A DNA stretch of 64,000 bases. It comes from Ranitomeya imitator. Lineage: Eukaryota. The translations under genes were made by a program, and so were the position numbers. Positions 10,240-43,239 of this stretch are shown here, one piece after another; within the stretch, counting starts at the first letter, position 1; each line of letters begins with the position of its first letter. The stretch spans positions 521,420,001 to 521,484,000 of the forward strand of contig NC_091286.1 of the NCBI RefSeq assembly GCF_032444005.1. The letters run 5' to 3'. The notes below the pieces were generated by a model that saw only the letters and a program-made list of their open reading frames with translations, did no database searches and was not told the DNA's origin.

Positions 10240-10727
10240 TTAGTGCACACAAAAAAGAGGCACAATCACACAAAACTAGAGAAAAAAAAGGTGCAATGGT
10301 AATGAATCCACTTTAGCAAAATAAAGTGAGCATTCCTATTTGAGTGTTTCTATATGACCTACAGACTAGAATGGAGCTTGCTGTCAGCATGCTCTGCTGC
10401 TGCTCTATACTACAGGGTGATTCACTCGCTACTTTACCAAGAAAAATTGCTGTAACGTCTAAGGCTATGTACACATGTTGTGGATTGGGGTGCAGAATTT
10501 TCTGTTCAAAATCTGCATCTCCTGGCAGAAAATGCAGGTGCAGATTTGATGTGTTTTTTATGCGGATTTTGTGCATTTTTGTTGCGGATTTTGTGCAGAT
10601 TTCATGCGGTTTTTTTAACCGCACCATTAGCACAGCATTTTTTTTCCTATTGATTTACATTGTACTGTAAATCACTTTGCGGATCTGCAGCATTTCTGCG
10701 CGGAAAAAAACGTTGCAGATCTACACT

Positions 10728-14479: not shown

Positions 14480-15699
14480 TACATAGCAGTACTTTAGTAT
14501 AGCACTATATAGTTTACGCAATCAGATGATTTAGAGGATCAAATCTTCTAAAGGGACTAAAAAATTAAGTAAAAAATAAAAGCAATTTTAGAAAATACAA
14601 AAATATATATAATATAAAAATTACAATCATTTACCTTTCCTCCACTGAAATTAAAACAATTATTCCCACATCTGTAAAAGTCTATATGGTATACACGACA
14701 CCTCATTGAAAAGATACTGTAAAAAGCATACAAAACATTATATATGTCACAAAATAATACTAATGAAAATGTCGGCTCCCCATAAAAAAGAAGACCTCTC
14801 AAAGCAAAAAAAATATAAAAAATAAAAACATTAGAGGTCTCGGAAAATGGTAGCAAAAACTAAAAATGTTTTTTAACAGCTTAAATAATGCTAAAATAGA
14901 AACTATGCAAATATGGTATTACATAATCATACTTGCTACTCAATATGAGTAATTATCAGATTATTTTTCCTACATAATGAGCTCTCCATAAAACAAAATT
15001 CAAAAAAATAATGGCAGAATTGCATTTTTCTACCATTTCAAAAATGGTTATCACAATAACAAATGAAAGGGAAAGTCAGCACTCACCATTCTTTGAAGAA
15101 AATTCAGTCATTTTTAATTTTTATTTAACCCCTTAATGACTGCAGATGTGCCTTTTAGCAGCGGCAATTAAGGGTACTTATGCCTCTGCGCCGCTTTTTA
15201 ACGATGCTGAGAAATAAGTGTATGGCAACCCCAGAGCTGGAAATTCTCCGGGGTCTCTGAGACCCTAGACAAAATGATTTGGGTCAGTTTTTACCAACCC
15301 CAGTGTTGTGGTTGCCGTTATCAATGGAATAATTTCCATAATTTCCCATTTATTTCTCTCTCCTCTGATATGAGCTAGCATACTAGAGGAGAGAGAAATG
15401 GGTTCCCCAGAGCTCCCACCCCGGTACCTATAGGAACCGTTGACCCTCCGGCTCTGTCTCCCAGCTCCGGCATCTTCCTGGAAGAAAATGGTGGGCACAT
15501 GCACAGTGCGCCCGCCAAAATCTGCCTGCCGGCACTCGGCAACAATAGGAGATTTTTCCTATTGGTTCATTTTGATCACTGTGATAGACCCTATCACAGT
15601 GACCAAAATTAAAAGAATAGTAAATCAAACCCCCCTTTATCACCCCCTTGGTTAGATAAAAATAATAAAATAAAAAATGTATTTTTTCCCATTTTTCCA

Positions 15700-16000
15700 T
15701 TAGAGTTAGGGTTGGGGCAAGGGTTAGGGTTGGACTAGGGTTGGGGTTGGGGCTAGGGTTAGGGTTGGGATTAGGGTTGTGTTGGGGTTAGGGTTGTGGT
15801 GTTGGGGTTAAGGTGGTGTTGTGGTTAGGGTTGTGGTTAAGGTTATGGTTGTGGCTGTGTTTGGGATTACAGAGTTGGAATTAAGGATAGGGCTGGGATT
15901 TGGTTAAGGGGTGTGTTAGGGTTAGGGTTGTGGTTCGGGTTATGATTGTAGTTAGGGTTGGGATTAGGGCTAGGGGTGTATTGAGGTTAGGGCTGTTAGA
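15700..16000 (+). repeat. Degenerate telomere-like (TTAGGG)n tract inside element A
   Basis: GTTAGGGTTGGGG, TTAGGGTTAGGGTTGGGATTAGGG and variants. Confidence 0.85.
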
Positions 16001-17129
16001 ATTGGGGGTCTCAAAATGCAACATGCCGCCCGCTATTGCATTCAAAAAGTCAAACTGTGTTCCCTCCCTTCTGAACCCTGCCATGTACCCAAACAGTGGC
16101 TTTCTTCCACATACAGAATATAGGTGGTCTATTGCACAACAAATTTTGTGGTTCATTTTCTCCTGTTACCATTGTGAAAATAAAAAAGTTTGGGTCTACA
16201 GAAAAATTTTTGGCAAACAAGTAAAATGTTCATATTTTCCTTCCATGTTTCCTTTGTTCTCGTGAAGCACCTGAAGGGTTAAAAAACTTCTTGAATGTGG
16301 TTTTGAGCACCTTGAGGGGTGCAGTTTATAGAATGGTGTCACTTTCGGGCATTTTCTGTCATATTGACCCTCCAAACTCACTTCAAATGTGAGGTGGTAC
16401 CTCAAAAAATAGTTTTGCAAATTTTGTTGGAAAAATGAGAAATCGCTGGTCATCTTTTAACCCTCATAAATGATGTTTCCAAAATTATGCTGATGTAAAG
16501 TTGACATGTGGGAAATGTTATTTATTAACCCCTTCATGACCCAGCCTATTTTGACCTTAAAGACCTTGCCGTTTTTTGCAATTCTGACCAGTGTCCCTTT
16601 ATGAGGTAATAACTCAGGAACGCTTCAACGGATCCTAGCGGTTCTGAGATTGTTTTTTCGTGACATATTGGGCTTCATGTTAGTGGTAAATTTAGGTCAA
16701 TAAATTCTGCGTTTATTTGTGATAAAAACGGAAATTTGGCGAAAATTTTGAAAATTTCGCAATTTTCACATTTTGAATTTTTATTCTGTTAAACCAGAGA
16801 GTTATGTGACACAAAATAGTTAATAAATAACATTTCCCACATGTTTACTTTACATCAGCACAATTTTGGAAACAAAATTTTTTTTGCTAGGAAGTTATAA
16901 GGGTTAAAATTTGACCAGCGATTTCTAATTTTTACAACGAAATTTACAAAACCATTTTTTTAGGGACCACCTCACATTTGAAGTCAGTTTGAGGGGTCTA
17001 TATGGCTGAAAATACCCAAAAGTGACACAATTCTAAAAACTGCCCCCCCCCAAGGTACTCAAAACCACATTCAAGAAGTTTATTAACCCTTCAGGTGTTT
17101 CACAGCAGCAGAAGCAACATGGAAGGAAA

Positions 17130-20100
17130 AAATGAACATTTAACTTTTTAGTCACAAAAATTATGTTTTAGCAACAATTTTTTTATTTTCCCAATGGTAA
17201 AAGGAGAAACTGAACCATGAAAGTTGTTTTCCAATTTGTCCTGAGTACGCTGATACCTCATATGTGGGGGTAAACCACTGTTTGTGCGCACGGCAGGGCT
17301 TGGAAGGGAAGGAGCGCCATTTGACTTTTTGAATGAAAAATTGGCTCCACTCTTTAGCGGACACCATGTCACGTTTGGAGAGCCCCCATGTGCCTAAAAA
17401 TTAGAGCTCCCCCACAAGTGACCCCATTTTGGAAACTAGACGCCCCACGGAACTAATCTAGATGCATAGTGAGCACTTTGAACCCCCAGGTGCTTCACAA
17501 ATTGATCCGTAAAAATGAAAAAGTACTTTTTTTTCACAAAAAAATTCTTTTAGCCTCAATTTTTTCATTTTCACATGGGCAACAGGATAAAATGGATCCT
17601 AAAATTTGTTGGGCAATTTCTCCTGAGTACACTGATACCTCATATGTGGGGGTAAACCACTGTTTGGGCACATGGTAAGGCTCGGAAGGGAAGGAGCGCC
17701 ATTTGACTTTTTGAATGAAAAATTATCTCCATCGTTAGCAGACACCATGTCGCGTTTGGAGAGCTCCTGTGTGCCTAAACATTGGCGCTCCCCCACAAGT
17801 GACCCCATTTTGGAAACTAGACCCCCCAAGGAACTTATTTAGATGCCTAGTGAGCACTTTAAACCCTCAGGTGCTTCACAAATTGATCTGTAAAAATGAA
17901 AAAGTACTTTTTTTTCACAAAAAAATTCTTTTTGCCTCAGTTTTTTCATTTTCACATGGGCAATAGGATAAAATGGATCATAAAATTTGTTGGGCAATTT
18001 CTCCCGAGTACACGGATACCTCATATGTGGGGGTAAACCACTGTTTGGGCACTCGGCAGGGCTCGGAAGGGAAGGTGCGCCATTTGACTTTTTGAATGGA
18101 AAATTAGCTCCAATTGTTAGCGGACACCATGTCGCGTTTGGAGAGCCTCTGTGTGCCTAAACATTGGAGCTCCCCCACAAGTGACCCCATTTTGGAAACT
18201 AGACCCCCCAAGGAACTTATATAGATGCATATTGAGCACTTTAAACCCCCAGGTGCTTCACAGAAGTTTATAACGCAGAGCCATGAAAATAAAAAATAAT
18301 TTTTCTTTCCTCAAAAATGATTTTTTTATCCTGGAATTTCCTATTTTGCCAAGGGTAATAGGAGAAATTGGACCCCAAATGTTGTTGTCCAGTTTGTCCT
18401 GAGTACGCTGATACCCCATATGTGGGGGTAAACCACTGTTTGGGCGCACGGCAGGGCTCGGAAGGGAAGGCACGCCATTTGGCTTTTTAAATGGAAAATT
18501 AGCTCCAATCATTAGCGGACACCATGTCACGTTTGGAGAGACCCTGTGTGCCTAAACATTGGAGATCCCCCAGAAATGACCCCATTTTGGAAACTAGTCC
18601 ACAAAAGGAACTAATCCAGATGTGTGGTGAGGACTTTGAACCCCCAAGTGCTTCACAGAAGTTTATAATGCAGAGCCATGAAAAAAAAAAAAATATTTTC
18701 TCAAAAATGATCTTTTAGCCTGCAATTTTTTATTTTCCCAAGGGTATCAGGAGAAATTTGACCCCAAAAGTTGTTGACCAGTTTCTCCTGAGTACGCTGA
18801 TACCCCATATGTGGGGGTAAACCACTGTTTGGGCACATGCCGGGGCTCGGAAGTGAAGTAGTGACGTTTTGAAACGCAGACTTTGATGGAATGCTCTGTG
18901 GGCATCACGTTGCGTTTGCAGAGCCCCTGATGTGGCTTAACAGTAGAAACCCCCCACAAGTGACCCCATTTTGGAAACTAGACCCCGAATGGAACTTATC
19001 GAGATGTGTGGTGAGCACTTTGAACCCCCCAGTGCTTCACAGAAGATTATAATGCAGAGCCGTGAAAATAATAAATACGTTTTCTTTGCTCAAAAATAAT
19101 TATTTAGCCCAGAATTTTTTAATTTTCCCAAGGGTAACAGGAGAAATTTGACCACAACATTTGTTGTCCAGTTTCTCCTGAGTACGGTGATATCCCATAT
19201 GTGGGGGTAAACTACTGTTTGGGCACATGCCGGGGCTCGGAATTGAAGTAGTGACGTTTTGAAATGCAGACTTTGATGGAATGCTCTGCGGGCGTCACGT
19301 TGCGTTTGCAGAGCCCCTGATGTGGCTAAACAGTAGAAACCCCCCACAAGTGACCCCATTTTGGAAACTAGACCCCAAAAGGAACTTATCTAGATGTGTG
19401 GTGAGCACTTTGATCCCCCAAGTGCTTCATAGAAGTTTATAATGCAGAGCCGTGAAAATAATAAATATGTTTTCTTTCCTCAAAAATAATTATTTAGCCC
19501 AGAATTTTTTAATTTTCCCAAGGGTAACAGGAGAAATTTGACCCCAATATTTGTTGTCCAGTTTCTCCTGAGTACGGTGATATCCCATATGTGGGGGTAA
19601 ACTACTGTTTGGGCACATGCCGGGGCTCGGAATTGAAGTAGTGACGTTTTGAAATGCAGACTTTGATGGAAAGCTCTGCGGGCATCACGTTGCGTTTGCA
19701 GAGCCCCTGATGTGGCTAAACAGTAGAAACCCCCCACAAGTGACCCCATTTTGGAAACTAGACCCCGAAAGGAACTTATCTAGATGTGTGGTGAGCACTT
19801 TGAACACCCAAGTGCTTCATAGAAGTTTATAATGCAGAGCCGTGAAAATAATAAATACGTTTTCTTTCCTCAAAAATAATTATTTAGCCCAGAATTTTTT
19901 AATTTTCCCAAGGGTAACAGGAGAAATTTGACCACAACATTTGTTGTCCAGTTTCTCCTGAGTACGGTGATATCCCATATGTGGGGGTAAACTACTGTTT
20001 GGGCACATGCCGGGGCTCGGAATTGAAGTAGTGACGTTTTGAAATGCAGACTTTGATGGAATGCTCTGCGGGCGTCACGTTGCGTTTGCAGAGCCCCTGA

Positions 20101-21290
20101 TGTGGCTAAACAGTAGAAACCCCCCACAAGTGACCCCATTTTGGAAACTAGACCCCAAAAGGAACTTATCTAGATGTGTGGTGAGCACTTTGATCCCCCA
20201 AGTGCTTCATAGAAGTTTATAATGCAGAGCCGTGAAAATAATAAATATGTTTTCTTTCCTCAAAAATAATTATTTAGCCCAGAATTTTTTAATTTTCCCA
20301 AGGGTAACAGGAGAAATTTGACCCCAATATTTGTTGTCCAGTTTCTCCTGAGTACGGTGATATCCCATATGTGGGGGTAAACTACTGTTTGGGCACATGC
20401 CGGGGCTCGGAATTGAAGTAGTGACGTTTTGAAATGCAGACTTTGATGGAAAGCTCTGCGGGCATCACGTTGCGTTTGCAGAGCCCCTGATGTGGCTAAA
20501 CAGTAGAAACCCCCCACAAGTGACCCCATTTTGGAAACTAGACCCCGAAAGGAACTTATCTAGATGTGTGGTGAGCACTTTGAACACCCAAGTGCTTCAT
20601 AGAAGTTTATAATGCAGAGCCGTGAAAATAATAAATACGTTTTCTTTCCTCAAAAATAATTATTTAGCCCAGAATTTTTTATTTTCCCAAGGGTTACAGG
20701 AGAAATTGGACAACAAAAGTTGTTGTCCAGTTTGTCCTGAGTACGCTGATACCCCATGTGTTGGGGTAAACCACTGTTTGGGCACACGTCGGGGCTCAGA
20801 AGGGAAGTAGTGACTTTTGAAATGCAGACTTTGATGGAATGGTCTGCGGGCATCACGTTGCGTTTGCAGAGCCCCTGGTGTGCCTAAACAGTAGAAACCC
20901 CCACAAGTGACCCCATTTTAGAAACTAGACCCTCCAAGGAACTTATCTAGATATGTGGTGAGCACTTTAAACCCCCAAGTGCTTCACAGACGTTTACAAC
21001 GCAGAGCTGTGAAAATAAAAATCATTTTTCTTTCCTCAAAAATTATGTTTTAGCAAGCATTTTTTTATTTTCACAAGGGTAACAGGAGAAATTGGACCCC
21101 AGTAATTGTTGCGCAGTTTGTCCTGAGTATGCGGGTACCCCATATGTGGGGGTAAACCACTGTTTGGGCACACGTCGGGGCTCGGAAGTGAGGGAGCACC
21201 ATTTGACTTTTTGAATACAAGATTGGCTGGAATCAATGGTGGCGCCATGTTGCGTTTGGAGACCCCTGATGTGCCTAAACAGTGGTAACC
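17130..21290 (+). repeat. ~390-bp tandem satellite, ~10-11 units, inside B
   Basis: Recurring CCCCACAAGTGACCCCATTTTGGAAACTAGA. Near-identical 89-aa ORF-track entries start at 19090, 19480, 19870 and 20260 (390-bp spacing). Confidence 0.95.
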
Positions 21291-21304
21291 CCTCAATTCT
21301 ACCT

Positions 21305-21403
21305 CCAACACTAACCCCAACACACCCCTAACTCTAATCCCAACTGTAGCGATAACCCTAATCACAACCCTAACCACAACCCTAATTCCAACCCTAACCC
21401 TAA
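21305..21403 (-). repeat. Degenerate (CCCTAA)n tract in B
   Basis: ACCCTAATCACAACCCTAACCACAACCCTAATTCCAACCCTAACCCTAA. Confidence 0.8.
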
Positions 21404-22090
21404 GGCTATGTGCCCACGTTGCGGATTCGTGTGAGATTTTTCAGCATCATTTTTGAAAAATCCGCGGGTAAAAGGCGCTGCGTTTTACCTGTGGATTTTC
21501 CGCAGATTTCCAGTGTTTTTTGTGCGGATTTCACCTGCGGATTCCTATTGAGAAATAGGTGTAAAACGCTGCGGAATCCGCACAAAGAATTGACATGCTG
21601 CGGAAAATACAATGCAGCGTTTCCGCGTGGGATTTTCCGCACCATGGGCACAGCGGATTTGGTTTCCATATGTTTACATGGTACTGTAAACCTGATGGAA
21701 CACTGCTGCGAATCTGCAGCCAAATCCGCACCATGTGCACATAGCCTAATTCTAAAGGTATGTGCACACGCTGCGGAAAACGCTGCGGATCCGCAGCAGT
21801 TTCCCATGAGTTTACAGTTCAATGTAAACATATGGGAAACAAAAATCGCTGTACACATGCTGCGGAAAAACTGCACGGAAACGCAGCGGTTTAAATTCCG
21901 CAGCATGTCACTTCTTTGTGCGGATTCCGCAGCGGTTTTACAACTGCTCAAATAGAAAATCGCAGTTGTAAAACCGCAGTGAAATGCTCAGAAAAAACGC
22001 GGTAAATCTGCCATAAATCTGCAGCGGTTTAGCACTGCGGATTTATCAAATCCGCAGCGGAAAAATCTGCAGAGGACCAGAATACGTGTG
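21404..22090. mobile_element. Two adjacent Harbinger-type MITEs (21404-21746; 21756 to the N run)
   Basis: TAA-GGCTATGTGCCCACG...TGTGCACATAGCC-TAA. The second starts TAA-AGGTATGTGCACACG and its right TIR (CGTGTG) is cut by Ns. Both are duplicated at 26021-26707. Confidence 0.8.
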
Positions 22091-22264
22091 NNNNNNNNNN
22101 NNNNNNNNNNNNNNNNNNNNNNNNNNNNNNNNNNNNNNNNNNNNNNNNNNNNNNNNNNNNNNNNNNNNNNNNNNNNNNNNNNNNNNNNNNNNNNNNNNNN
22201 NNNNNNNNNNNNNNNNNNNNNNNNNNNNNNNNNNNNNNNNNNNNNNNNNNNNNNNNNNNNNNNN
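22091..22264. other. N run of 174 nt (others: 26708-26893, 186 nt; 31014-31302, 289 nt)
   Basis: Direct count from the sequence. Confidence 0.98.
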
Positions 22265-22309
22265 GGAAAAAAAAAATTCTTTATTTTTTTATTGTCCCTA
22301 CCTATGAGG

Positions 22310-22545
22310 GTGTGGGGGGAGCACGGGGGGGGGGGATCGGAGCATGGGGGGGTGAATCGGAGCGTGGGAGGGGTGGAACGGAGCACGGGGGGGTGGAACG
22401 GAGCACGGGTGGGTGGAACGGAGCACGGGGGGTGGAACGGAGCACGGAGGGGGGTGGATCGGAGTGCAGGGGGGGTGATTGGAGCACAGGGAGGGTGATT
22501 GGAGCACGGGGGGAGCGGACTAGAGCACGGGGGGAGCGGAGCACA
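22310..22545 (+). repeat. G-rich ~20-bp minisatellite (GGGTGGAACGGAGCACGGGG), duplicated at ~26940-27170
   Basis: Visible tandem units with a variable G-run. Confidence 0.9.
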
Positions 22546-23085
22546 GGACGGAGGGGAGCCGGAGCAGTGTACCGGACAGATCAGAGGTCCGGGGGGGCGA
22601 TCGGTGGGGTGAGGGCACATTAGTGTTTCCAGCCATGGCCGATGATATTGCAGCATCGGCCATGGCTGGATTGTAATATTTCACCAGTTATAATAGGTGA
22701 AATATTACAAATCGCTCTGATTGGCAGTTTCACTTTCAACAGCCAATCAGAGCGATCGTAGCCACGGGGGGGGGGGGTGAAGCCACCCCCCCTGGGCTAA
22801 ACTACCACTCCCCCTGTCCCTGCAGATCGGGTGAAATGGGAGTTAACCCTTTTACCCGATCTGCAGGGACGCGATCTTTCCATGACGCCACATAGGCGTC
22901 ATGGGTCGGATTGGCACCGACTTTCATGACGCCTACGTGGCGTTAAAGATCAGGAAGGGGTTAACTATTTTGTGTGACACAACTCTCTGATCTAAAGGCA
23001 CAAAAATTAAATTTTGAAAATTGCTAAATTTTCTAACTTTTTGCAAGCTTCCATTTTTTTCATAAATAAACACAAATCATATTAA

Positions 23086-26000
23086 CCCCTTAGTGACAGA
23101 GCCAATTTGGTACTTAATGACCAGGCCAATTTTTGCAATTCTGACCACTGTCACTTTATGAGGTTATAACTCTGGAACGCTTCAACGGATCGCGCTGATT
23201 CTGAGAATGTTTTTTCGTGACATATTGTACTTCATGTTAGTGGTAACATTTCTTCGATATTACTTGCGATTATTTATGAAAAAAACGGAAATATGGCGAA
23301 AATTTTTAAAATTTTGCAATTTTCAAACTTTGTATTTTTATGCCCTTAAATCAGAGAGATATGTCATAAAAAATAGTTAATAAATAACATTTCCCACATG
23401 TCTACTTTACATCAGCACAATTTTGGAAACAAAATTTTTTTTTGTTAGGGAGTTATAAGGGTTAAAATTGACCAGCAATTTCTCATTTTTACAACACCAT
23501 TTTTTTTTAGGGACCACATCACATTTGAAGTCATTTTGAGGGGTCTATATGATAGAAAATAATGAAGTGTGACACCATTCTAAAAACTACACCCCTCAAG
23601 GTTCTCAAAACCACATTCAAGAAGTTTATTAACCCTTTACGTGCTTCACAGGAACTGAAACAATGTGGAAGGAAAAAATGAACATTTAACTTTTTTTTGC
23701 AAACATCTTAATTCAGAACCATTTTTTTTATTTTCACAAGTGTAAAAACAGAAATGTAACCATAAATTTTGTTATGCAATTTCTCCTGAATACGCCAATA
23801 CCCCATATGTGGGGGTAAACCACTGTTAGGGCGCACCGCAGAACTTAGAAGTGAAGGAGCGCCGTTTGACTTTTTCAATGCAGAATTGGCTGGAATTGAG
23901 ATCGGACACCATGTCACATTTAGAGAGCCCCTGATGTACCTAAACAGTGGAAACTCCCCACAAGTGACACCATTTTGGAAACTAGACCCCTTAAGGAACT
24001 TATCTAGATGTGTGGTGAGCACTTTGAACCCCCAAGTGCTTCACAGAAGTTTATAACGTAGAGCCGTGAAAATAAAAAATCGCTTTTGTTTACACAAAAA
24101 TGATCTTTTTGCCCACAAATTCTTATTTTCACAAGGGTAACAGGAGAAATTAGACCACAAAAGTTGTTGTGCAATTTCTCCTGAGTACGCTGATACCCAA
24201 TATGTGGGGGTAAACAACTGTTAGGGCGCACCGCAGAGCTTGGAAGAGAAGGAGTGCCGTTTTACTTTTTCAATGTAGAATTGGCTGGAATTGAGATTGG
24301 ACGCCATGTCGCGTTTGGAGAGCCCCTGATGTGCCTAAACAGTGGAAACCCCCCACAAGTGACACCATTTTGGAAACTAGACCCCTTAAGGAACTTATCT
24401 AGATGTGTGGCGAGCACTTTGAACCCCCAAGTGCTTCACAGAAGTTTATAACGTAGAGCCGTGAAAATAAAAAATATTTTTTTTTCCACAAAAAAGATAT
24501 TGTAGCCCCCAAGTTTTTATTTTCACAAGGGTAACAGGAGAAATTGGACTGCAATAGTTGTTGTCCAATTTATCCCGAGTACGCTGATGCGCCATATGTG
24601 GCGGTAAACCACTGTTTGGGCGCACGGCAGAGCTCGGAAGGGAAGGAGCGCCTTTTTGGAATGCAGACTTTGATAGAATGGTCTGTGGGCATCACGTTGC
24701 GTTTGCAGAGCCTCTGATGTGGCTTAACAGTAGAAACCCCCCACAAGTGACCCCATTTTGGAAACTAGACCCCGAATGGAACTTATCGAGATGTGTGGTG
24801 AGCACTTTGATCCCCCAAGTGCTTCATAGAAGTTTATAATGCAGAGCCGTGAAAATAATAAATACGTTTTCTTTCCTCAAAAATAATTATTTAGCCCAGA
24901 ATTTTTTAATTTTCCCAAGGGTAACAGGAGAAATTTGACCCCAATATTTGTTGTCCAGTTTCTCCTGAGTACGGTGATATCCCATATGTGGGGGTAAACT
25001 ACTGTTTGGGCACATGCCGGGGCTCGGAATTGAAGTAGTGACGTTTTGAAATGCAGACTTTGATGGAAAGCTCTGCGGGCATCACGTTGCGTTTGCAGAG
25101 CCCCTGATGTGGCTAAACAGTAGAAACCCCCCACAAGTGACCCCATTTTGGAAACTAGACCCCGAAAGGAACTTATCTAGATGTGTGGTGAGCACTTTGA
25201 ACACCCAAGTGCTTCATAGAAGTTTATAATGCAGAGCCGTGAAAATAATAAATACGTTTTCTTTCCTCAAAAATAATTATTTAGCCCAGAATTTTTTATT
25301 TTCCCAAGGGTTACAGGAGAAATTGGACAACAAAAGTTGTTGTCCAGTTTGTCCTGAGTACGCTGATACCCCATGTGTTGGGGTAAACCACTGTTTGGGC
25401 ACACGTCGGGGCTCAGAAGGGAAGTAGTGACTTTTGAAATGCAGACTTTGATGGAATGGTCTGCGGGCATCACGTTGCGTTTGCAGAGCCCCTGGTGTGC
25501 CTAAACAGTAGAAACCCCCACAAGTGACCCCATTTTAGAAACTAGACCCTCCAAGGAACTTATCTAGATATGTGGTGAGCACTTTAAACCCCCAAGTGCT
25601 TCACAGACGTTTACAACGCAGAGCTGTGAAAATAAAAATCATTTTTCTTTCCTCAAAAATTATGTTTTAGCAAGCATTTTTTTATTTTCACAAGGGTAAC
25701 AGGAGAAATTGGACCCCAGTAATTGTTGCGCAGTTTGTCCTGAGTATGCGGGTACCCCATATGTGGGGGTAAACCACTGTTTGGGCACACGTCGGGGCTC
25801 GGAAGTGAGGGAGCACCATTTGACTTTTTGAATACAAGATTGGCTGGAATCAATGGTGGCGCCATGTTGCGTTTGGAGACCCCTGATGTGCCTAAACAGT
25901 GGTAACCCCTCAATTCTACCTCCAACACTAACCCCAACACACCCCTAACTCTAATCCCAACTGTAGCGATAACCCTAATCACAACCCTAACCACAACCCT

Positions 26001-31410: not shown

Positions 31411-33872
31411 ATTTTAGCCCCAACTGCTGTTCTCCTGCCGGCCGGCAGATGGAGACAGATGGCGGGCGCACTGGGCATGCGTCCGCCATGTTCTGCTGCC
31501 GGCGGCCAGGAGGAGCAGCAAGAGGATCCAGGGACCTAGGTGAGTATGCTAGGGTCCCCGAATCCCCCTATTTCTCTGTCCTCTGATGTGCGATCACATC
31601 AGAGGACAGAGAATTACACTTTACTTTTTTTTTTTTTTTTTTTTTTTTTGCGGTCGCCGGTAAACAGTTAATTACCGGCGATCGCAAAACAGGAGTCGGT
31701 AATACCGACCCCGATCGTGCTCTTTGGGGTCTCGGCTACCCCCGGCAGCCGAGACCCCAAAGATTCTCCCGGTGCCAGCCGGCGGGCGCACTGCGCATGC
31801 GCCCGCCATTTTGAAGATGGCGGCGCCCACCGGGAGACACGAGGAGCATCGGGGGAGCTAGGTGAGTATTGGGGGGCCACCTGGGACCCCTTTTCTCTGT
31901 CCTCCGATGTGCGATCACATCGGAGGACAGAGAAATTAAAAAGAGATCGCTTTTTTTTTTTTTTTTTTTTTGCGATCGCCGGTAAACGGTTAATTACCGG
32001 CGATCGCAAATGCGGGGTGGGTTAAAAAACCCCCGAATCATGTTCTCTGGGGTCTCGGCTACCCTCGGCAGCCGAGACCCCGGAGAAAATCGGCCTCTGG
32101 GGGGCGCTATGGACTTTTTCCACAGCGCCGTTAATTAACGGCGCTGTGGTTTAAGTACCCTTAGCGGCCGCCGTTAAAAGGCGTATCGGCGGTCGCTAAG
32201 GGGTTAAATAAGTTTTACCACTAACATAAATCACAATATGTCACGAAAAAACAGTCTCAGAATCAGTGGAATCCATTGAGCTATAACCTCATAAATTGAC
32301 AGTGGTCAGAATTGTAAAAATTGGCTTGGTCATTAAGTACAAAATTTGCTCAGTCACTACGAGGTTAAATTCATTACGAATCGAACATCCTGTGAAAAAA
32401 CACACGAACAAGCAAATTTGATATTTCCCTTATCAACACATCTCTAGTCACCACGTTTTTCCTACCTTATCTGAGAACTGATGTACTGTAGAGGCAGAGA
32501 CCATGATTGCAGTCAGGGCCAGACTGGGACTAAAATTCAGCCCTGGCATTTGAAGGTACATAGGCCCACTTGTCACATGGTGACTGTATAATATCTTTGT
32601 ACACTTGTAGGTTACAAGAAGTGAAGGAAGTGTAACATGATTTCATAACATATAATTACAGCTGTATCCAGCATTACAGCTCAGTCCTATTTATTGCTTT
32701 TAGTTGCAGTACCAAGAAAAGCCGCTACTTTATCTACATAACTGGATCTCGTAGATAATGAAGGGATGAGACAACCAAAGGCTATGGAACCTCATTCTGA
32801 TGCTCCATAAACGTTGCCTACAGCCACTTTTGGTTCCGCTGCGCAGCACGAGACCCGGTGACTCTGATGAGCGGTGACATCAGTAACGTCACCGCTCTTC
32901 CGATATTTCGGGTCTTGCGCTGAGCTCGGCGACTGTGAAGAGCGGTACTGTTACTTCCGTTTCCGCTCTTCAGAGTCGCTGGGTCTCACCATGACAGGAC
33001 TAGTAGTGGGGGTGTCTGATAGACACTTCTTCATTACTTACACCAGGGATTGATAGCAGCTGACATTGCGCAGCTGACATCAACCCTAAAAATCATTACA
33101 CATACCAGAATTAAATGCTTTGGTGGCTGGGAAAAGCAGTAGAGTTAGCGCTATTCCCAGGGTGCTAACTACAACTGTCATCATCCTTGCCTCATCTCCC
33201 TGTGAAGCATTTCTGCTGTATTTACATGCGCTGATCTCAGGCCGCTAAACGAGTGTGATCGACAATACTGAAGTCGTTCGCTTGTTTCCCGGCCTCTTTA
33301 CACCAACTGAGAAAGAATGAAGGGAACAGAACAATCACAATTAGATCAATCTGTCCCCATCCAGTATCATGTTATCAGCTTCACATCTACAGTTTACACA
33401 TGATAGAGACATGGATTATGGCATGGGACAGTATGTCAGACAGGTGAGGGATATAAACAACAAAAAAACTAGGCAACATATTAGCAGGGAATTTAAAGCA
33501 CTAAATAGCGCTGAAAAAACCCAAAGCCAAAAAGGCAAACTAACTCCATATAGATCATTGGAAGAAAGGAGTATAAACGGAGCAAAAGAATGATGCAAAA
33601 GGTAATTTATTAAACATATAGTGCATAAATATATACAAAAAGTACAAACAGGATGGTTAAAATTAGAGTGAGTCTCCACCAGCAAACACACTGCCAAGAG
33701 TCATTATCCCACATATAAGGTAGTAGTAGGGAAGTAGCCTAATGTGAACACCAAGTTACCGCTGTGGGTAACTAGTATACCCCCCACAGTGTAAAATACC
33801 CATAACCAGGCGGCGCTTACCACAAGAATATGCAGAGGCAGTGTGTACCGGGCAGGATTCAGTCCAGGGAAA

Positions 33873-33919
33873 CCCCGACGCGCGTTTCGCTGACGCAGAT
33901 GTTCGGCTTTCTCAAGGGG
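33873..33919 (-). ncRNA. Minimal type I hammerhead ribozyme motif in the 3' terminal repeat of the PLE
   Basis: Minus strand reads CCCC-UUGAGAA-AGC(loop)GC-GAAAC-GCGC-GUC-GGGG: stem I of 4 bp, U3/A8 core, palindromic loop 3, GUC cleavage triplet. Confidence 0.7.
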
Positions 33920-36900
33920 AAGTGCCCCAGAACAGGAAAGGACCCTTCAAATAGCGCGGACTCGGCAGCATGTGACAGATCACATGTAACGCCCCAGCCA
34001 ACTGCAGCCAGAATAGCGGAGCATGCGTGCCTGGGGAACCCCGTCCCACGTCAAAGACGGCGTCAGGTATCGCTCCGCCGCTGTGGGGAGGGGAAACCCC
34101 ACAGCGCCTGCACGAGACCACAGAGACGCCGCTCGGACGGGAACCAAGGGAACCAAAAGCCGCGCATGCGCACCCAAGCATGCCTGATCAAAATAAGTCA
34201 GCGGAGCGGGTGTATGCCTAAGTAAGCCCAAATGTGTGAATATAACCCATACGAACGTGCAGTACCCAGCGTAAAATGTATATTAGATACAGCCATGAGT
34301 ATTATAACAGACAATAATTAGCTAAAGGAGATGCCATAAGAATATAGTCCATGTAGTATCACATAAGCTGGGGAAACAGCACATATAATGCTTCCAACAT
34401 GTGACAGAATCCGTCCATAAGAGGTGTCCTAAGAGTCGGAGCAGGGTGGATGGAGAGAGTAAAACTAGAAATAATAAGACAAGAAATAAGTAAATGGATA
34501 AAAACAACAATAAAAACAGAAAAAATCCACACAGAGAACCCACGCATTGGGAACTCGAAAGTGGGCACGGGTCAGGAGATAATATCACATACACAAATGC
34601 TTAAAGGAGAACAAAGAGAAATTCTCTATACATATTAGGGTTTAGCCTAAAAAGGAAGAGAAGCTGAGGGACTCGTTAAGTCCAGTTGGGGTCATGGTGT
34701 TGAGGCGCACAATCCAAGCAGCTTCTCGTTGCGCTAGCACTTTTTTGTAATTCCCGCCTCTGACCCCAAGATGGACATAATCGATGCCTCTGACCTGAAG
34801 AGTCCCCGCGTCACAATCATGAAAGAGTTTAAAGTGACGGGGGAGTGCCTTCAGGTCAGAGTCATCAGTGGCCGTCCGTGCGGCACGGATGTCTCTAACA
34901 TGTTCCCGGACGCGTAGCCGAAGTTCTCTGGACGTAAGTCCCACATATATAAGAGAACATCCGCAGGTGGCATAATATATGACATTAGATGTACCACATG
35001 TAATGTGGTGTCTGATGTCATATACCCTGGAACCGAAGATTTAAAAGACAAAGTCCGTACCATATTGGTACAAGCCACACAATGACCACACTTGAAAGAG
35101 CCCAACAGTGGGCCCCTAGTACTAAATGGGTTCACAGTAGGAGGGACATAGTGACTCCGGACCAACAAGTTACCCAAGTTGGGGGATCTTCTAGCAGTCA
35201 TTGACGGAAATTCCCCCACAGCAGAAGCTAATGAGGGTTCCGTCAACAGGACCGACCAGTGTTTTCTTAAAATTTCCCGCATATTTGTCCACTCGTGATT
35301 ATACGTGGTAATAAACCGGACTCTATCTCCCTCTGTTTGTGTCTCCCGTTTACTAGTTTTTGGGTACAATAGGTCCCTCCGTGGTGTCCTTCTGGCTCTT
35401 TCAAACCCCCGTTTGATGGTCCTGTGGCTGTACCCACGTGCCTCAAAACGTCCCCTCAGGTCCTCCGCCTGTGCGAGGAATCTGTTGTCAGTAGAGCAAA
35501 TCCGTCTCATCCTCAGGAACTGTCCGACCGGGACAGCCCTGACAGTACTATAATTGTGTGCTGAACCTGCATGCAAGAGAGCGTTGACTGACGTCGACTT
35601 CCTGTAGACGTCCATCTGAATATGACGAGCATCATCAATCTCAAATGTAACATCCAGGAAGTCGATACGTTGGTCGTGAAATTGATATGTCAGTTTAATG
35701 TTAAGCTCATTATCATTAACCCCTTAATCCCATATGACGTACTATCCCGTCCAGGTGACCTGGGACTTAATTCCCAGTGACGGGATAGTACGTCATATGC
35801 GATCGGCCGCGCTCACGGGGGGAGCGCGGCCGATCGTGGCCGGGTGTCAGCTGCCTATCGCAGCTGACATCCGGCACTATGTGCCAGGAGCGGTCACGGA
35901 CCGCTCGCGGCACATTAACCCCCGGCACACCGCGATCAAAGATGATCGCTGTGTGCCGGCGGTGCAGGGAAGCATCGCGCAGGGAGGGGGCTCCCTGCGG
36001 GCTTCCCTGAGACGATCGGTACACGGTGATATACTCACCGTGTACCGAGCGTCTTCTCCCTGCAGTCCCCGGATCCAAAATGGCCGCCGGGCTGCATCCG
36101 GGTCCTGCAGGGAGCACTTCCGGGTCAGGATCAGGCTGCAGCTGCAGCTCTAATCCTGCCCGGCTGTATGTCAGATCACCGATCTAACAGAGTGCTGTGC
36201 ACACTGTCAGATTGGTGATCTGTGATGTCCCCCCCTGGGACAAAGTGAAAAAGAAAAAAAAAACAAATTCCTAAGTAAAGCAGAAAAAAAAATATTATTC
36301 CCATAAATACATTTCTTTATCTAAAAAAAAAACAAAAAAACAATAAAAGTACACATATTTAGTATCGCCGCGTCCGTAACGACCCGACCTATAAAACTGG
36401 CCCACTAGTTAACCCCTTCAGTGAACACCGTAAGAAAAAAAAAAAAAACGAGCCAAAAAAACAACGCTTTATTATCATAACGCTGAACAAAAAGTGGAAT
36501 AACACGCGAACAAAAAGACGGATATAAATAACCATGGTACCTCTGAAAACGTCATCTTGTCCTGCAAAAAACGAGCCGCCATATAGCATCATAACCAAAA
36601 AAATAAAAAAGTTATAGTCCTCAGAATAAAGCGATGCCAAAATAATTATTTTTTCTATAAAATAGCTTTTATCGTATAAAAGTGCCAAAACATAAAAAAA
36701 ATGATATAAATGAGGTATCGCTGTAATCGTACTGACCCGAAGAATAAAACTGCTTCATCAATTTTACCAAACGCGGAACGGTATAAACGCCTCCCCCAAA
36801 AGAATTTCATGATTAGCTGGTTTTTGGTCATTCTGCCTCACAAAAAATCGGAATAAAAAGCGATCAAAAACTGTCATGTGTCCAAAAATGTAACCGATAA

Positions 36901-37109
36901 AAACGTCAACTCGTCCCGCAAAAAACAAGACCTCACGTGACTCTGTGGACCAAAATATCGAAAAATTATAGGTCTCAAAATGTGGAGACGCAAAAATTTT
37001 TTTGCTATAAAAAGCGTCTTTTAGTGTGTGACGGCTGCCAATCATAAAAATCCGATATAAAAAACGCTATAAAAGTAAATCAAACCCCCCCTCATCACCC
37101 CCTTAGTTA

Positions 37110-37465
37110 GGCTAGGTTCACATTGCGTTAATGGGTTAACGCTAACGGACAGCGTGGCACGGCGAAAATGTCACAATTAACGCCGTGCAACGGGTCCGTT
37201 AGCACAACCATTGACAGCAATGTGATTTTCGGGTGTAGCGCATCGCTAGAGCGTGCCATTTTCGGCTCGCGCTAGCAAGGTGCCGTTCCTTTGTGGCGCG
37301 CCTCAGACGCTGCTTGCAGCGTCCGCGGCGCGCCCGAGGTCCGATCCCCGATCTTCCAGAGCGGGGACGTTAACGCGACCACTAAACACGACACCTAAAA
37401 AGACATTGCGTTAGCGCAATCCGCTAGCGCTAAACGGATTTCCCTAACGCAATGTGAACCTAGCC
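37110..37465. mobile_element. Harbinger-type MITE in D
   Basis: TTA-GGCTAGGTTCACATTGCGTT ... AACGCAATGTGAACCTAGCC-TTA. Confidence 0.88.
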
Positions 37466-37516
37466 TTAGGGAAAAATAATAAAATTAAAAAAAATGTATT
37501 TATTTCCATTTTCCCA

Positions 37517-37700
37517 TTAGGGTTAGGGCTAGGGTTAGGGTTAGGGCTAGGGTTAGGGCTAGGGTTAGGGTTAGGGTTTGGATTACATTTACGGTTGGGA
37601 TTAGGGTTGGGATTAGAATTAGGGGTGTGTCATGGTTAGGTGTGTGGTTAGGGTTACAGTTGGGATTAGGGTTAGGGGTGCGTTTGGATTAGGGTTTCAT
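37517..37700 (+). repeat. Telomere-like tract in D; ~10 clean TTAGGG/CTAGGG units, then degenerate
   Basis: TTAGGGTTAGGGCTAGGGTTAGGGTTAGGGCTAGGG... Confidence 0.92.
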
Positions 37701-39870
37701 TTATAATTGGGGGGTTTCCACTGTTTAGGCACATCAGGGGCTCTCCAAACGCGACATGGCGTCCGATCTCAATTCCAGCCAATTCTGCATTGAAAAAGTA
37801 AAACAGTGCTCCTTCACTTCCGAGCTCTCCCGTGCGCCCAAACAGGGGTTTACCCCAACATATGGGGTATCATCGTACTCGAGACAAATTGGACAACAAC
37901 TTTTTGGGTCCAAGTTCTCTTGTTATCCTTGGGAAAATAAAAATTTGGGGGGCTAAAACTCATTTTTGTGGGAAAAAAAAAGGATTTTTTATTTTCACGG
38001 CTCTGCGTTGTAAACTGCGTTGTAATCTAGATAAGTTCCGTGGGAGGTCTAGTTTCCAATATGAGGTCACTTGTGGGGGGTTTGTACTGTTTGGGTACAT
38101 CAGGGGCTCTGCAAATGCAACGTGACGCCTGCAGACCAATCCATCTAAGTCTGCATTCCAAATGGCGCTCCTTCCCTTCCGAGCTCTGCCATGCGCCCAA
38201 ACAGTGGTTCCCCCCCACATATGGGGTATCAGCGTACTCAGGACAAATTGTACAACAACTTTTGGGGTCCAATTTATTCTGTTACCCTTGTAAAAATACA
38301 AAGCTGGGGGCTAAAAAATCATTTTTGTGAAAAAAAAAGAATTTTTATTTTCACGGCTCTGCGTTATAAACTGTAGTGAAACACTTAGGGGTTCAAAGTT
38401 CTCACAACACATCTAGATAAGTTCCTTGGGAGGTCTAGTTTCTAATATGGGGTCACTTGTGGGGGGTTTGTACTATTTGGGTACATCAGGGGCTCTGCAA
38501 ATGCAACGTGACTCCTGCAGACCAATCCATCTAAGTCTGCATTCCAAATGGCGCTCCTTCCCTTCCGAGCTCTGCCATGCGCCCAAACAGTGGTTCCCCC
38601 CCACATATTGGGTATCAGCGTACTCAGGACAAATTGGACAACAACTTTTGGGGTCCAATTTATTCTGTTACCCTGGTGAAAATACAAAACTGGGGGCTAA
38701 AAAATAATTTTTGCGAAAAAAAAAAAAAATAATTTTAACGGCTCTGCGTTATAAACTGTAGTGAAGCACTTGGGGGTTCAAAGCTCTCAAAACACATCTA
38801 GATAAGTTCCTTAGGGGGTCTAGTTTCCAAAATGGTGTCACTTGTGGGGGGTTTTAATGTTTAGGCACATCAGGGGCTCTCCAAACCAACATGGCATCCC
38901 ATCTTAATTCCAGTCAATTTTGCATTGAAAAGTCAAATGGCGCTACTTCCCTTCCGAGCTCTGCTATGCACCCAAAAAGTGGTTTACCCCCACATATGGG
39001 GTATCGTCGCACTCAGGACAAATTGCACAACAACTTTTGTGGTCTAATTTCTTCTCTTACCCTTGGGAAAATAAAAAATTGGTGGCGAAAAGATCATTTT
39101 TGTGAAAAAATATGATTTTTTATTTTTACGGCTCTGCATTATAAACTTCTGTGAAGCACTTGTTGGGTCAAAGTGCTCATCACACCTCTAGATAAGTTCC
39201 TTAAGGGGTCTACTTTCCAAAATGGTGTCACTTGTGGGGATTTCAATGTTTAGGCACATCAGGGGCTCTCCAAACACAACATGGCATCCCATCTCAATTC
39301 CAGTCAATTTTGCATTGAAAAGTAAAATGGCGCTCCTTCCCTTCCGAGCTCTGCCATACGCCCAAACAATGGTTTACACCCATATATGGGGTATCAGCGT
39401 ACTCAGGACAAATTGGCCAACAATTTTTGAGGTTCAATTTCTTCTCTTACTCTTGGGAAAATAAAAATTGGGGGCGAAAAGATCATTTTTGTGAAAAAAT
39501 ATGATTTTTTATTTTTACGGCTCTGCATTATAAACTTCTGTGAAGCAATTGGTGGGTCAAAGTGGTCACCACACATCTAGATAAGTTCCTTAAGGGGTCT
39601 ACTTTCCAAAATGGTGTCACTTGTGGGGGGTTTCAATGTTTAGGCACATGAGGGGCTCTCCAAACGCAACATGGCGTCCCATCTCAATTCCTGTCAAATG
39701 GCGCTCCTTTCCTTCCGAGCTCTGCCATGCGCCCAAACAGTGGTTTACCCCCACATATGGGGTATCAACGTACTCAGTACAGATTGTACAACAATGTTTG
39801 GCATCCATTTTATCCTGTTACCCTTGGTAAAATAATACAAATTGGAGGTGAAATAAATTTTGTGTGAAAA
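37700..39870 (-). repeat. ~390-bp satellite, ~5-6 units, reverse orientation, in D
   Basis: Reverse complement of the B/C unit (TCTAGTTTCCAAAATGGTGTCACTTGTGGGG). Confidence 0.9.
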
Positions 39871-42863
39871 AAAGTTAAATATTCATTTTTATTTAAACAT
39901 TCCAAAAATTCCTGTGAAACCCCTGAAGGGTTAATAAACTTCTTGAATGTGGTTTTGAGCACCTTGAGGGGTGCAGTTTTTAGAATGGTGTCACACTTGG
40001 GTATTTTCTATCATATAGACCCCTCAAAATGACATCAAATGAGATGTGGTCCCTAAAAAAAAATGGTGTTGTAAAAATGAGAAATTGCTGGTCAACTTTT
40101 AACCCTTATAACTCCCTAACAAAAAAAAATTTTGGTTCCAAAATTGTGCTGATGTAAAGTAGACATGTGGGAAATGTTACTTATTAAGTATTTTGCGTGA
40201 CATATCTCTGTGATTTAAGGGCATAAAAATTTAAAGTTGTAAAATTGCGAAATGTTCTAAATTTTCGCCAAATTTCCGTTTTTTTCACAAATAAACGCAA
40301 GTTATATCGAATAAATGTTACCATTAAAATGAAGTACAATATGTCACGAGAAAACAATGTCAGAATCGCCAAGATCCGTTTAAGCGTGAATTCCCCGAGC
40401 TGCTGGGCTGTTCCCCCCCACAAAAACAGGATGTCATCAATATAGCGCATCCAGCACAGCACGTGGTCCGCGGACTGCGCGCCCCCGTCGCCAAAAATGA
40501 GTCTCTCCCATGATCCCAGGAAGAGATTAGCGTACGAAGGCGCACAGGCCGAGCCCATGGCTGTGCGGCGCTTCTGCAGATAATAATTGTCTTTGAAGGC
40601 AAAAAAGTTGTGGGAGAGAACAAAGCGCAGCAGCTCGAGGACAAGTTCGCACATACGGCCGTCCAGGTCGGAAGGCCCTAAGGAAGAGACGGACTGCAGC
40701 CAAACCGCTTTCGTGGTCAATACACGTATAAAGAGTCTGGACGTCAGCGGTGACCAAAAGGACACCAGGATCGACAAGGACGCCGTCAACACGTGAGAGG
40801 ACGTCCGTTGTGTCTCTTACATATGACGGTAACACCTCCACAAGTGGCTTAAGATAAAATTCAATGAATTTGCACACTGGATAACACAAGCCGTCAATGC
40901 CTGACACAATCGGACGCCCCGGTGGGTTGACGGCGTCCTTGTGGACCTTTGGTAACAGATAAAAAGTTGGTGTCCTTGGTGATCTCACCGTGAGTCCCTC
41001 CAACACTTTTTTATCAATAATCCCATCATCTAGCGCCCTACCAAGAATGGTCTGTAGCTGGGAGGAGAAGGAGGCCATCGGGTTATATGCTAATTTTGTA
41101 TAAGTTGAGGTATCCCTCAACTGTCGAAAAGCTTCTTTCTCGTATTTGTCACATGGCCAGACGACGATGTTCCCCCCCTTGTCAGCAGGCTTAAATACAA
41201 CATCTTTATAAGATTTTAACTCATTAATGGCCACTCTCTGCCTATGCGTCAGGTTATCAAACCTGCGTTTAGAGGATAGTTGCTTTAAATCCTCGGTGAC
41301 CAGACGTGTAAATATGTCCATCGCTGGACATAAGGACAAGGGGGGGAACCTCGTCGATCTGGGCATAATATCTGATGGAAACCTACCTTGGGGTACGATG
41401 GTTTGTTCCTCCAGGAGGTCCTCCAAGGCCCGCAAGGCCTCCGTCTCCATCCCAGCCACGGACCCATGAGGTGGATAGTTCTTAGAATGTAACTTTTTAA
41501 GACTAGCTTCCGGGAAAAGAGGTGAAGGTCCTTCATAGCTACAAAGAAATCAAAAGGATTAGTTGGTGAGAAGCTCAAACCCCTACCAAGTACCTCAATC
41601 TGATCCTTAGTGAAAGTTCTTGAAGATAGATTCAGTACCTGAAGGCCACCACTATTGCCAGCCCCTTGTTGTTTCCCAGATGAATTCTTGGTTTTAGAGG
41701 TCTGGTGTGTCACGATCTTGTTGGACTGAGGCTTTGGCCCAGATTGACTTCTAGAGGGTTCGGAATATGACACATTATCTTCTGATGGAACATTAGAAGC
41801 AGTGGACCTGGATCTGGATCGAGAGGTTGAATAATTTCTGAAGTGGGGGCGTGAGCGATAATTAGAGCTACGCCACCTATATACATTGCCAGTCTGTTTG
41901 TCATGAACATCACGTTTAAATTTTCTTGCCTTTGAATTTTGTATTTCATTGACCCATTTTTGTAGATCCACATCCACTTCATCATTGAGTTTTTTGATTG
42001 CCTCTCCCGACATATCTCTTTTCAGAGTTTGCTGTACAGTTTCGATTTCTTTCTCTATTTCACTTAATTTGTGTAAATCCAGGCCCTAAGGTAATAAAAC
42101 CCAGAGCACAGTTTGTAGACAATTCCTCCCACTTATTTTTGAACTTGTCATCCGTAATAGGGAATGATGGAAATACTTGGATTCTCAAACCACGTGGGAT
42201 GAGACCCCCTTCTAGATACTTCTCAAGGAAGGCATGATTCCATCAGACCCTTGTTCTCTTTCTTAAAAGTTCCTTAAATTGCACAATAGTCTCCTGTAGA
42301 TCCCTGCCCAGCCCGTCCGGGCCCCCATTAAAACCATCCTTGAGTGTATCATTAATTTGGGCACGCCAAGTGGAATCTCGTGCCCGAAAGTCCATAATGG
42401 GCCTAAAAGAGACTGTGATAAACACAGAAGCATAAGTAACAACAAAAAAACTAGGCAACATATTAGCAGGGAATTTAAAGCACTAAATAGCGCTGAAAAA
42501 ACCCAAAGCCAAAAAGGCAAACTAACTCCATATAGATCATTGGAAGAAAGGAGTATAAAGGGAGCAAAAGAATGATGCAAAAGGTAATTTATTGATCAGG
42601 CATGCTTGGGTGCGCATGCGCGGCTTTTGGTTCCCTTGGTTCCCGTCCGAGCGGCGTCTCTGTGGTCTCGCGTAGGTGCTGTGGGGTTTCCCCTCCCCAC
42701 AGCGGCGGAGTGATACCTGACGCCGTCTCTGACGTGGGACGGGGTGCCCCAGGCACGCATGCGCCGCTATTCTGGCTGCCGTTGGCTGGGGCGTTACATG
42801 TGATCTGTCACATGCTGCCGAGTCCGCGCTATTTGAAGGGTCCTTTCCTGTTCTGGGGCACTT

Positions 42864-42910
42864 CCCCTTGAGAAAGCCGAACATCCGCGTCAGCGAAACG
42901 CTCGTCGGGG
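42864..42910 (+). ncRNA. Second hammerhead motif, in the inverted 5' terminal repeat of the PLE
   Basis: CCCC-TTGAGAA-AGCCGAACATCCGCGTCAGC-GAAAC-GCTC-GTC-GGGG; loop 3 is GCTC and not palindromic. Confidence 0.6.
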
Positions 42911-43239
42911 TTTCCCTGGACTGAATCCTGCCCGGTACACACTGCCTCTGCATATTCTTGTGGTAAGCGCCGCCTGGTTACGGGTATTTTACACTGTGGG
43001 GGGTATACTAGTTACCCACAGCGGTAACTTGGTGTTCACATTAGGCTACTTCCCTACTACTACCTTATATGTGGGATAATGACTCTTTTGCAGTGTTTTT
43101 GCTGGTGGAGACTCACTCTAATTTTAACCATCCTGTTTGTACTTTTTGTATATATTTATGCACTATATGTTTAATAAATTACCTTTTGCATCATTCTTTT
43201 GCTCCGTTTATACTCCTTTCTTCCAGGTGAGGGATATAG

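Follow-up and report, generated by a model that had tools for sequence, protein, structure and literature searches.

The window analysed here is a repeat-rich 64-kb stretch of the Ranitomeya imitator genome (NCBI RefSeq assembly GCF_032444005.1, contig NC_091286.1, positions 521,420,001 to 521,484,000 of the forward strand), and all positions are counted from its first base. It holds five element-like blocks, A to E, which derive from four independent insertions: A, B, the C/D ancestor and E (Table 1). The blocks share a core that consists of an arm, an ordered array of 390-bp satellite units (0.55-10.4 units) and a telomere-like tract; array and tract together make up 40-65% of a copy, and copies are 4.5-6.4 kb long. 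We are reasonably confident that this family is a high-copy, non-autonomous, non-coding DNA transposon targeting TTAA, most likely of the piggyBac type. A sequence-only reading of the window had described four elements built on one order of parts. The feature is real and that interpretation was largely right: the shared core stands, but three corrections are needed, since the elements are nested, C is either a recombinant or a chimera, and the tails are heterogeneous.

In the structure that we propose, each copy would join a conserved 5' module to a variable 3' module. The 5' module would run from a 12-15-bp terminal repeat, CCCCTTMRTGAC, through an AT-rich arm of about 620 bp and the 390-bp array, itself probably derived from the inner part of the arm, to a degenerate CCCTAA tract. 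The 3' module would differ among copies and keep a constant ending, ...AAGGGG. The terminal motif TTAACCCCTT was found nine times against 0.37 expected, a count that no shuffled sequence reached, and the extended motif TTAACCCCTTMRTGAC, allowing up to three mismatches, was found 12 times against 1.9 expected. Inward from TTAACCCCTT, arm-type sequence is found at 16525, 23082 and 27715, Y-type sequence at 15125 and 32207, Z-type sequence at 22964 and 27597, and two further types of sequence at 35716 and 36409. The left and right ends, the right being given as the reverse complement in B and C/D, read CCCCTTCATGAC and CCCCTTCCTGAT in B, CCCCTTAGTGAC and CCCCTTAGCGAC in C/D, and CCTCGTAGTGAC and CCCCTTAATGAC in A. 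The arm copies are 82-90% identical to one another, except that the arms of C and D agree at 99.5%.

Table 1. Positions of the elements and their parts in the window
Feature	Positions	Strand	Remark
Element A	15125-32365	-	apparently oldest copy, inverted, whole from TTAA to TTAA, interrupted by B and C/D
A, ends	15125; 32353-32368	-	TTAACCCCTTAATGAC; TTAACCTCGTAGTGAC (minus strand)
A, Y-type terminal domain	15129-15615	-	homologous to the Y domain of D
A, T-rich/G-run block T1	15616-15699	-	adjoins telomere-like tract; common to A and E, resembles B just past the N run
A, telomere-like tract	15700-15995	-	TTAGGG on + strand; 10 perfect hexamers in ~300 bp
A, satellite remnant	~16004-16215	-	~0.55 unit, contracted array; 16036-16529 matches 17338-16819 (BLAST)
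A, arm part b	16216-16524	-	inverted copy of inner arm; 82.5% identity to part b of B
TTAA	16525-16528		left target-site duplication of B; conserved arm site between parts a and b
Element B	16529-22960	+	
B, arm	16529-17154	+	
B, satellite	17155-21295	+	10.4 units; Tandem Repeats Finder 17155-21191 (10.4 copies), extended by BLAST
B, telomere-like tract	21296-21403	+	
B, two Tourist-like MITEs	21404-21746, 21759-22090		
B, N run 1	22091-22264		174 bases
B, Z domain	22265-22960	+	
TTAA	22961-22964		right target-site duplication of B
A, arm part a, first piece	22965-23081	-	arm positions ~291-167; the 117-bp "spacer" of the sequence-only reading
TTAA	23082-23085		left target-site duplication of C/D ancestor
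Element C, putative hybrid	23086-27593	+	
C, arm	23086-23700	+	
C, satellite	23724-25912	+	5.3 units; Tandem Repeats Finder 23724-25813 (5.3 copies), extended by BLAST
C, candidate crossover zone	24692-24748	+	in third satellite unit
C, telomere-like tract	25913-26020	+	
C, MITEs	26021-26707		
C, N run 2	26708-26893		186 bases
C, Z domain	26894-27593	+	
A, arm part a, second 117-bp piece	27598-27714	-	identical to the first, duplicated with the 4.6-kb unit
Element D	27719-32203	+	
D, arm	27719-28333	+	
D, satellite	28358-30142	+	4.4 units; Tandem Repeats Finder 28358-30095 (4.4 copies), extended by BLAST
D, telomere-like tract	30143-30541, 30964-31013, 31303-31425	+	three pieces
D, Tourist-like MITE	30543-30963		
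D, N run 3	31014-31302		
D, Y domain	31426-32203	+	contains two ~320-bp repeats
TTAA	32204-32207		right target-site duplication of C/D ancestor
A, arm part a, outer piece	32208-32365	-	arm positions ~162-1, with terminal TTAA of A
Domain W	35716-36408	-	GC-rich, palindrome-rich, own TTAACCCCTT end
Element E	36409-40387	-	independent inverted copy, arm truncated at arm position 92
E, end	36409	-	TTAA and CCCCTTCAGTGAAC
E, tail	36413-37070	-	A-rich, CpG-rich, 35% GC
E, T1 block	37071-37108, 37467-37516	-	two pieces
E, Tourist-like MITE	37109-37466		
E, telomere-like tract	37517-37707	-	
E, satellite	37708-39873	-	4.8 units; Tandem Repeats Finder 38025-39872 (4.8 copies, inverted), extended by BLAST
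E, arm	39874-40387	-	

The clearest evidence for mobility is that the elements are nested rather than adjacent: A contains both B (16529-22960) and the C/D ancestor (23086-32203), as judged from the arrangement of its arm. B and the C/D ancestor are each bounded by a duplicated TTAA within this arm. We reconstructed the empty arm by joining 16216-16528, 22965-23085 and 32208-32369 with one TTAA at each join and reverse-complementing the product, so that each empty site is a single TTAA. Over about 600 bp the reconstructed arm is collinear with its counterparts in B, C, D and E, at 82-85% identity and without a gap at either join. The two 117-bp pieces at 22965-23081 and 27598-27714, identical to each other, are inverted copies of arm positions ~167-291. 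At 23082-23085, A carries TTAA; the corresponding bases of the other arms are TCAA or TCGA. Both nested insertions landed in the arm of A, and TTAA occurs at 10-17 per kb in the arm copies compared with 5 per kb in the window.

The arm of A resumes directly beyond both tail ends, that of B (Z) and that of D (Y). The inserted unit therefore extends from the CCCCTT end of the arm to the AAGGGG end of the tail, so that arm, array, tract and tail travelled together as a single piece. For the same reason, the possibility that the Z or Y domains were later insertions was rejected. We also discarded the idea that part a of the arm is a separate MITE (miniature transposable element with inverted repeats): it lacks inverted ends, and every arm copy shows it joined to part b without a break. 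The Y domain has a GC content of 0.48 and an observed/expected CpG ratio of 0.51 in A, compared with 0.56 and 1.06 in D; together with the mutated end of A, these values make A look the oldest of the copies.

The satellite unit measured 389-393 bp in Tandem Repeats Finder, and the arrays were extended by BLAST. The first units of C and D (C1/D1) correspond to the second unit of E (E2) at 85% identity, and the last units of B, D and E (B10, D4 and E4) correspond at 81-85%, so the master copies already carried several differentiated units. Units B5 to B9 are mutually 94-100% identical, with B6 equal to B8, which indicates a local expansion after the lineage of B had split from the others. In A the array has shrunk to 0.55 unit. 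The array thus shrinks or grows in place after insertion, within a range of 0.55-10.4 units.

Every array gives way to a telomere-like tract, and the junction is the same each time. Copies A, B, D and E can be aligned across the passage from last unit to tract (CCTAAACAGTGGAAACCCCCCAATTCTA) and over the initial ~60 bp of the tract itself; because this holds for four independent copies, the tract was inherited with the element rather than added locally. The nested insertions and conserved junctions together bear out the earlier proposal of mobile non-coding TTAA units that carry satellite and telomere-like tract together. Satellite and tract are also confined to the elements, at least in this window: all 28 satellite phase anchors lie inside elements, as do 70 of the 100 TTAGGG/CCCTAA hexamers, which fall in the tracts, and the other 30 equal the chance expectation. 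Perfect hexamers cover 20-44% of tract bases and the longest perfect run is 2-3 repeats, values that are lower bounds given the N runs in the distal tract. In a single copy, the tract appears too degenerate to behave as a telomeric site would. Rather than functional telomere DNA, tract and satellite would be passengers fixed in the family sequence. Block T1 marks the distal edge of the tract.

Tourist-like MITEs of 340-420 bp lie in the telomere-like tract or at its edge in three of the four independent copies (positions in Table 1; those at 26021-26707 in C are copies of the pair in B). They have related terminal repeats, GGCTATGTGCACACG, GGCTACTTTCACACTTGCG and GGCTAGGTTCACATTGCG, and 3-bp flanks of TAA/TAA, TAG/TAA and TTA/TTA. 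The CCCTAA tract, which offers TAA every 6 bp, may have been a landing pad for them.

Element C was mapped by an in-register three-way alignment and an exact 30-mer map. Positions 22326-24410 find their match 4633 bases downstream, in the second Z domain, the second spacer, the arm of D and its first units, and 24460-24692 matches D at an offset of +5026, a change which means that C is one unit shorter than D. Beyond 24748, C agrees with B, and 25270-26707 matches at an offset of -4617 with no difference. In the D-like part, compared over 22782-24410 and 24460-24692, there are seven single differences; to the left of 22782, in the Z domain, further differences and indels separate it from the D side. 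The alignment points to C as a hybrid of D on the left and B on the right, at ~99-100% identity, and not an independent copy. Such a hybrid would arise by a recent unequal crossover between the array of D on one chromatid and that of B on the other. As it stands, C comprises the arm of D, a chimeric array and the tail of B, with proper ends and TTAA on both sides.

An alternative that we regard as unlikely, yet serious, is that C, and hence the tandem arrangement of B, C and D, is an assembly artefact. The contig at 22265-26707, which lies between two N runs, would then be chimeric, switching between the satellite units of D and of B, and the true locus would be A with B and D only. This contig starts and ends at positions exactly homologous to the starts and ends of its neighbours, its segment 25270-26707 is 100% identical to B while the other side is ~99.6% identical to D, and the family is extremely repetitive. 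Logan contigs on 22265-24900, from four runs, are only 60-104 bp long and do not bridge the hybrid junction. On the other hand, C differs from D at the seven single positions, in the Z-domain minisatellite and by one unit fewer, and there are unique 30-mers at its crossover; C is therefore not simply one sequence used twice. Elsewhere the window runs without interruption across 10 satellite units, which suggests long-read data, and the two N runs, differing in length by 12 bases or two hexamers, may be masks rather than gaps. An artefact would in any case touch only C; the nested insertions of B and D stand either way.

N runs 1 and 2 have homologous boundaries in B and C. Before each, a Tourist-like MITE breaks off shortly ahead of its terminal repeat, and after each comes a T1-like block. 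N run 3 lies within telomere-like repeats, which show an identical 24-bp variant to its left and to its right. The order of parts is consistent across all three runs, which makes continuity plausible, and nothing coding depends on it. All three sit where the distal telomere-like tract is expected, and instead of being true gaps they may mask purer repeats.

The shared GC/CpG-rich terminal domain of the sequence-only reading did not survive comparison of the tails. The Y domains of A and D are homologous (68-75% identity, local-alignment z=30). By BLAST and local alignment, in contrast, we found no significant similarity between Z (in B and C) and Y, and nothing significant beyond low-complexity matches between the tail of E or domain W and either Y or Z; the tail of E, moreover, has only 35% GC. 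Although Y, Z and W are alike in style, each with a T-rich block, a G run and palindromes, they are not recognisably one domain. To judge from these comparisons, the "terminal domain" is a position rather than one sequence, apparently filled by at least three unrelated kinds. Domain W is either the outer terminal domain of E or part of another element that received E.

The Y domain of D also holds promoter-like motifs, in 31461-31546 and 31780-31868: GCGCATGCGC at 31793-31802, GCCATTTT at 31805-31812 and AAGATGGC at 31814-31821. The splice-donor-like AGGTGAGTA occurs at 31538 and 31860 and points outward to the end of the element. Weaker versions of the promoter-like motifs lie at ~15430-15520 and in W near 36040-36085. 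A captured or ancestral 5' region could be the source of these motifs.

That none of the elements encodes a transposase, as first claimed, was upheld. None of the 10 scanned open reading frames (ORFs) of at least 100 amino acids inside the elements matched Pfam, and scans of 18 ORFs of the window against Pfam and three against NCBIfam gave nothing inside the elements and no DDE_Tnp_1_7 transposase anywhere in the window. Arm, array, tract, inserted MITEs and tail add up to the whole length of the elements. The Pfam matches in the window (reverse transcriptase, endonuclease, integrase and related domains) fall outside the elements, at 623-1624, 10660-12573 and 45783-49940, and a weak match at 40184-40792 overlaps only the truncated end of the arm of E. 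Rfam, searched over the whole window at gathering scores, returned neither a family nor a hammerhead.

Termini of the form CCC...GGG combined with a TTAA duplication are the piggyBac pattern. The elements described here duplicate TTAA and have CCC...GGG termini with a short terminal inverted repeat of ~13 bp. Read as a piggyBac signature, the TTAA-CCC ends hold in their CCC...GGG part, whereas TTAA alone is not specific to piggyBac because Kolobok elements also duplicate it (PMC6004289). It is accordingly conceivable, but very unlikely, that the family belongs to another TTAA-targeting superfamily of the Kolobok/T2 type. Both the Kolobok elements and the T2 MITEs of Xenopus duplicate TTAA, and one of them, Xmix, carries an amplified internal repeat, Xstir (PMC6004289). 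Yet every full-length copy listed for Xenopus has the Kolobok/T2 ends AG/AGGRR (PMC6004289), whereas all ends here start with CCCC(T)T and finish with AAGGGG, and the AG/AGGRR motif is absent from them.

Several points weigh against the picture of a single piggyBac-type family. It was built on one 64-kb window. The superfamily was assigned from target-site duplication and termini only. Since the tails Y, Z, W and that of E have no detectable homology to one another, "one family" holds for the 5' module only. Element C lies between N runs at homologous positions, with no difference in its B-like half and about seven in its D-like half. Finally, E is a truncated copy whose outer end may lie at 36409 or at 35716.

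A pre-existing local heterochromatic block of satellite and telomere-like DNA, in which unrelated TTAA MITEs landed, would accommodate the several CCCCTT-ended sequence types, the heterogeneous tails and the other MITEs that did land in the tracts, but is highly improbable: the arm of A resumes right outside the ends of B and C/D, marking arm to tail as the inserted unit, the arm-array and array-tract junctions are the same in all four independent copies, even in E, which sits among other sequence at a distance of 4 kb, and no satellite unit lies outside the elements in the window.

For a piggyBac-type element, a transposase supplied in trans would cut both ends and paste the whole unit into TTAA, duplicating it. 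Exchange between the arrays of neighbouring copies would make hybrids such as C, with one copy's arm and another's tail, and the same exchange would be a likely source of the different 3' modules of the family. We tentatively suggest a further possibility, more doubtful than the transposon assignment itself: that array and tract act as a built-in recombination cassette which swaps arms and terminal modules and creates elements still able to transpose, C being one just formed, and that the family thereby seeds a major satellite, the 390-bp one, as well as most of the interstitial telomere-like sites in the very large genome of this frog and its relatives.

Read data speak for abundance. In three organisms, 80,000-167,000 short Logan contigs matched 2.6 kb at 95% identity or more, and words sampled from arm and satellite were present at 0.55-0.92 in runs of seven organisms from seven studies; these contig and word figures are a sign of high copy number, not copy counts. 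Summed word depth was highest for arm and satellite, lower for the Z minisatellite and lowest for the old spacer from the arm of A. Our literature search found no description of this family, and a paper on the transposons of the strawberry poison frog (PMC6278860) makes no mention of either piggyBac or satellites.

Transposons with tandem repeats inside them are already known as a kind, and an element such as the one described here is real, yet has precedents. Vertebrate non-autonomous piggyBac elements and MITEs, such as Xenopus TxpB with Uribo2 and Kobuta (cited in PMC6004289), agree with it in TTAA duplication, CCC...GGG termini and short terminal inverted repeat, and also in their high copy number and the absence of a transposase gene. 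They are, however, a few hundred base pairs long, in contrast to 4.5-6.4 kb here, where 40-65% is array plus telomere-like tract and the 3' modules are interchangeable. Being non-coding but well above the size of a strict MITE (below ~800 bp), the copies described here are better termed non-autonomous elements on account of their length. Xmix/Xstir, from a Xenopus T2 MITE studied by Hikosaka and co-workers (cited in PMC6004289), is likewise a non-autonomous, TTAA-targeting frog element with an internal segment turned into a dispersed tandem-repeat family; it differs in its AGGRR termini, its repeat unit and the lack of a telomere-like tract.

The order of modules is nearly matched by the DTC84/pearl tandem-repeat MITEs of bivalves and insects, in which a flank is followed by as many as ~5 core repeats whose variants keep a fixed order, with a microsatellite at one end of the array, and then by another flank (PMC3879986), and repeat copy number varies between copies there as here. 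The likeness is architectural only. The DTC84/pearl elements have AA/TT insertion sites, a rolling-circle (Helentron) affiliation and ~150-bp repeats (PMC3879986), whereas the family described here has piggyBac-like ends, 390-bp units, a TTAGGG-like microsatellite and a TTAA duplication in place of the AA/TT insertion without TTAA duplication by which that group is recognised (PMC3879986). Arrays borne by Helentrons have also been reported in oyster (PMC7492417). DTC84/pearl and Xmix/Xstir thus belong to other transposon groups, and neither has a TTAGGG-like microsatellite. Compared with the interstitial telomeric sequences of anurans (PMC3975639, PMC6803351), the tracts are similarly TTAGGG-like, away from chromosome ends and associated with repetitive DNA, but they are 100-400 bp long, degenerate, with at most three perfect repeats in a row, dispersed by transposition and known from sequence alone.

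Should the family prove as abundant as the read data indicate, it offers a concrete path for the spread of satellite and telomere-like DNA through a large amphibian genome by a cut-and-paste transposon. The length of the array demonstrably changes after insertion, and C is offered as an example, caught in the act, of transposon copies exchanging parts by way of their satellite. No mechanism of a new kind is revealed. The observations are relevant to the origin of satellites from transposons, to the reading of interstitial telomere probe signals in frogs, and to the annotation and assembly of such genomes.

Around element E, an inverted repeat pair (33523-34191 and 42592-43259; 670 bp, 96% identical) brackets E and its flanks, and the minus-strand ORFs 34851-35615 and 40184-42013 gave only a weak reverse-transcriptase match. 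E and W may therefore lie inside a retroelement. Even at an E value of up to 1, positions 33500-34300 matched no Rfam family, and no hammerhead was found there. At 44099-44114 a degenerate end of the arm type, TCAACACCTTAGTGAC, occurs without detectable arm homology adjoining it, and may be the end of another related family.

Elsewhere in the window, an AT-rich tandem array at 61989-62935, with a 91-93-bp unit, ~10 copies and 71% match, is unrelated to the 390-bp satellite. Fragments of long interspersed nuclear elements contribute an endonuclease domain at 623-1624 (plus strand) and a reverse transcriptase at 10660-12573 (plus strand). On the minus strand, 45783-49940 holds an open 1385-amino-acid ORF for a Ty3/gypsy-type polyprotein with gag, reverse transcriptase, RNase H, integrase and chromodomain, and looks like a young long terminal repeat retrotransposon.

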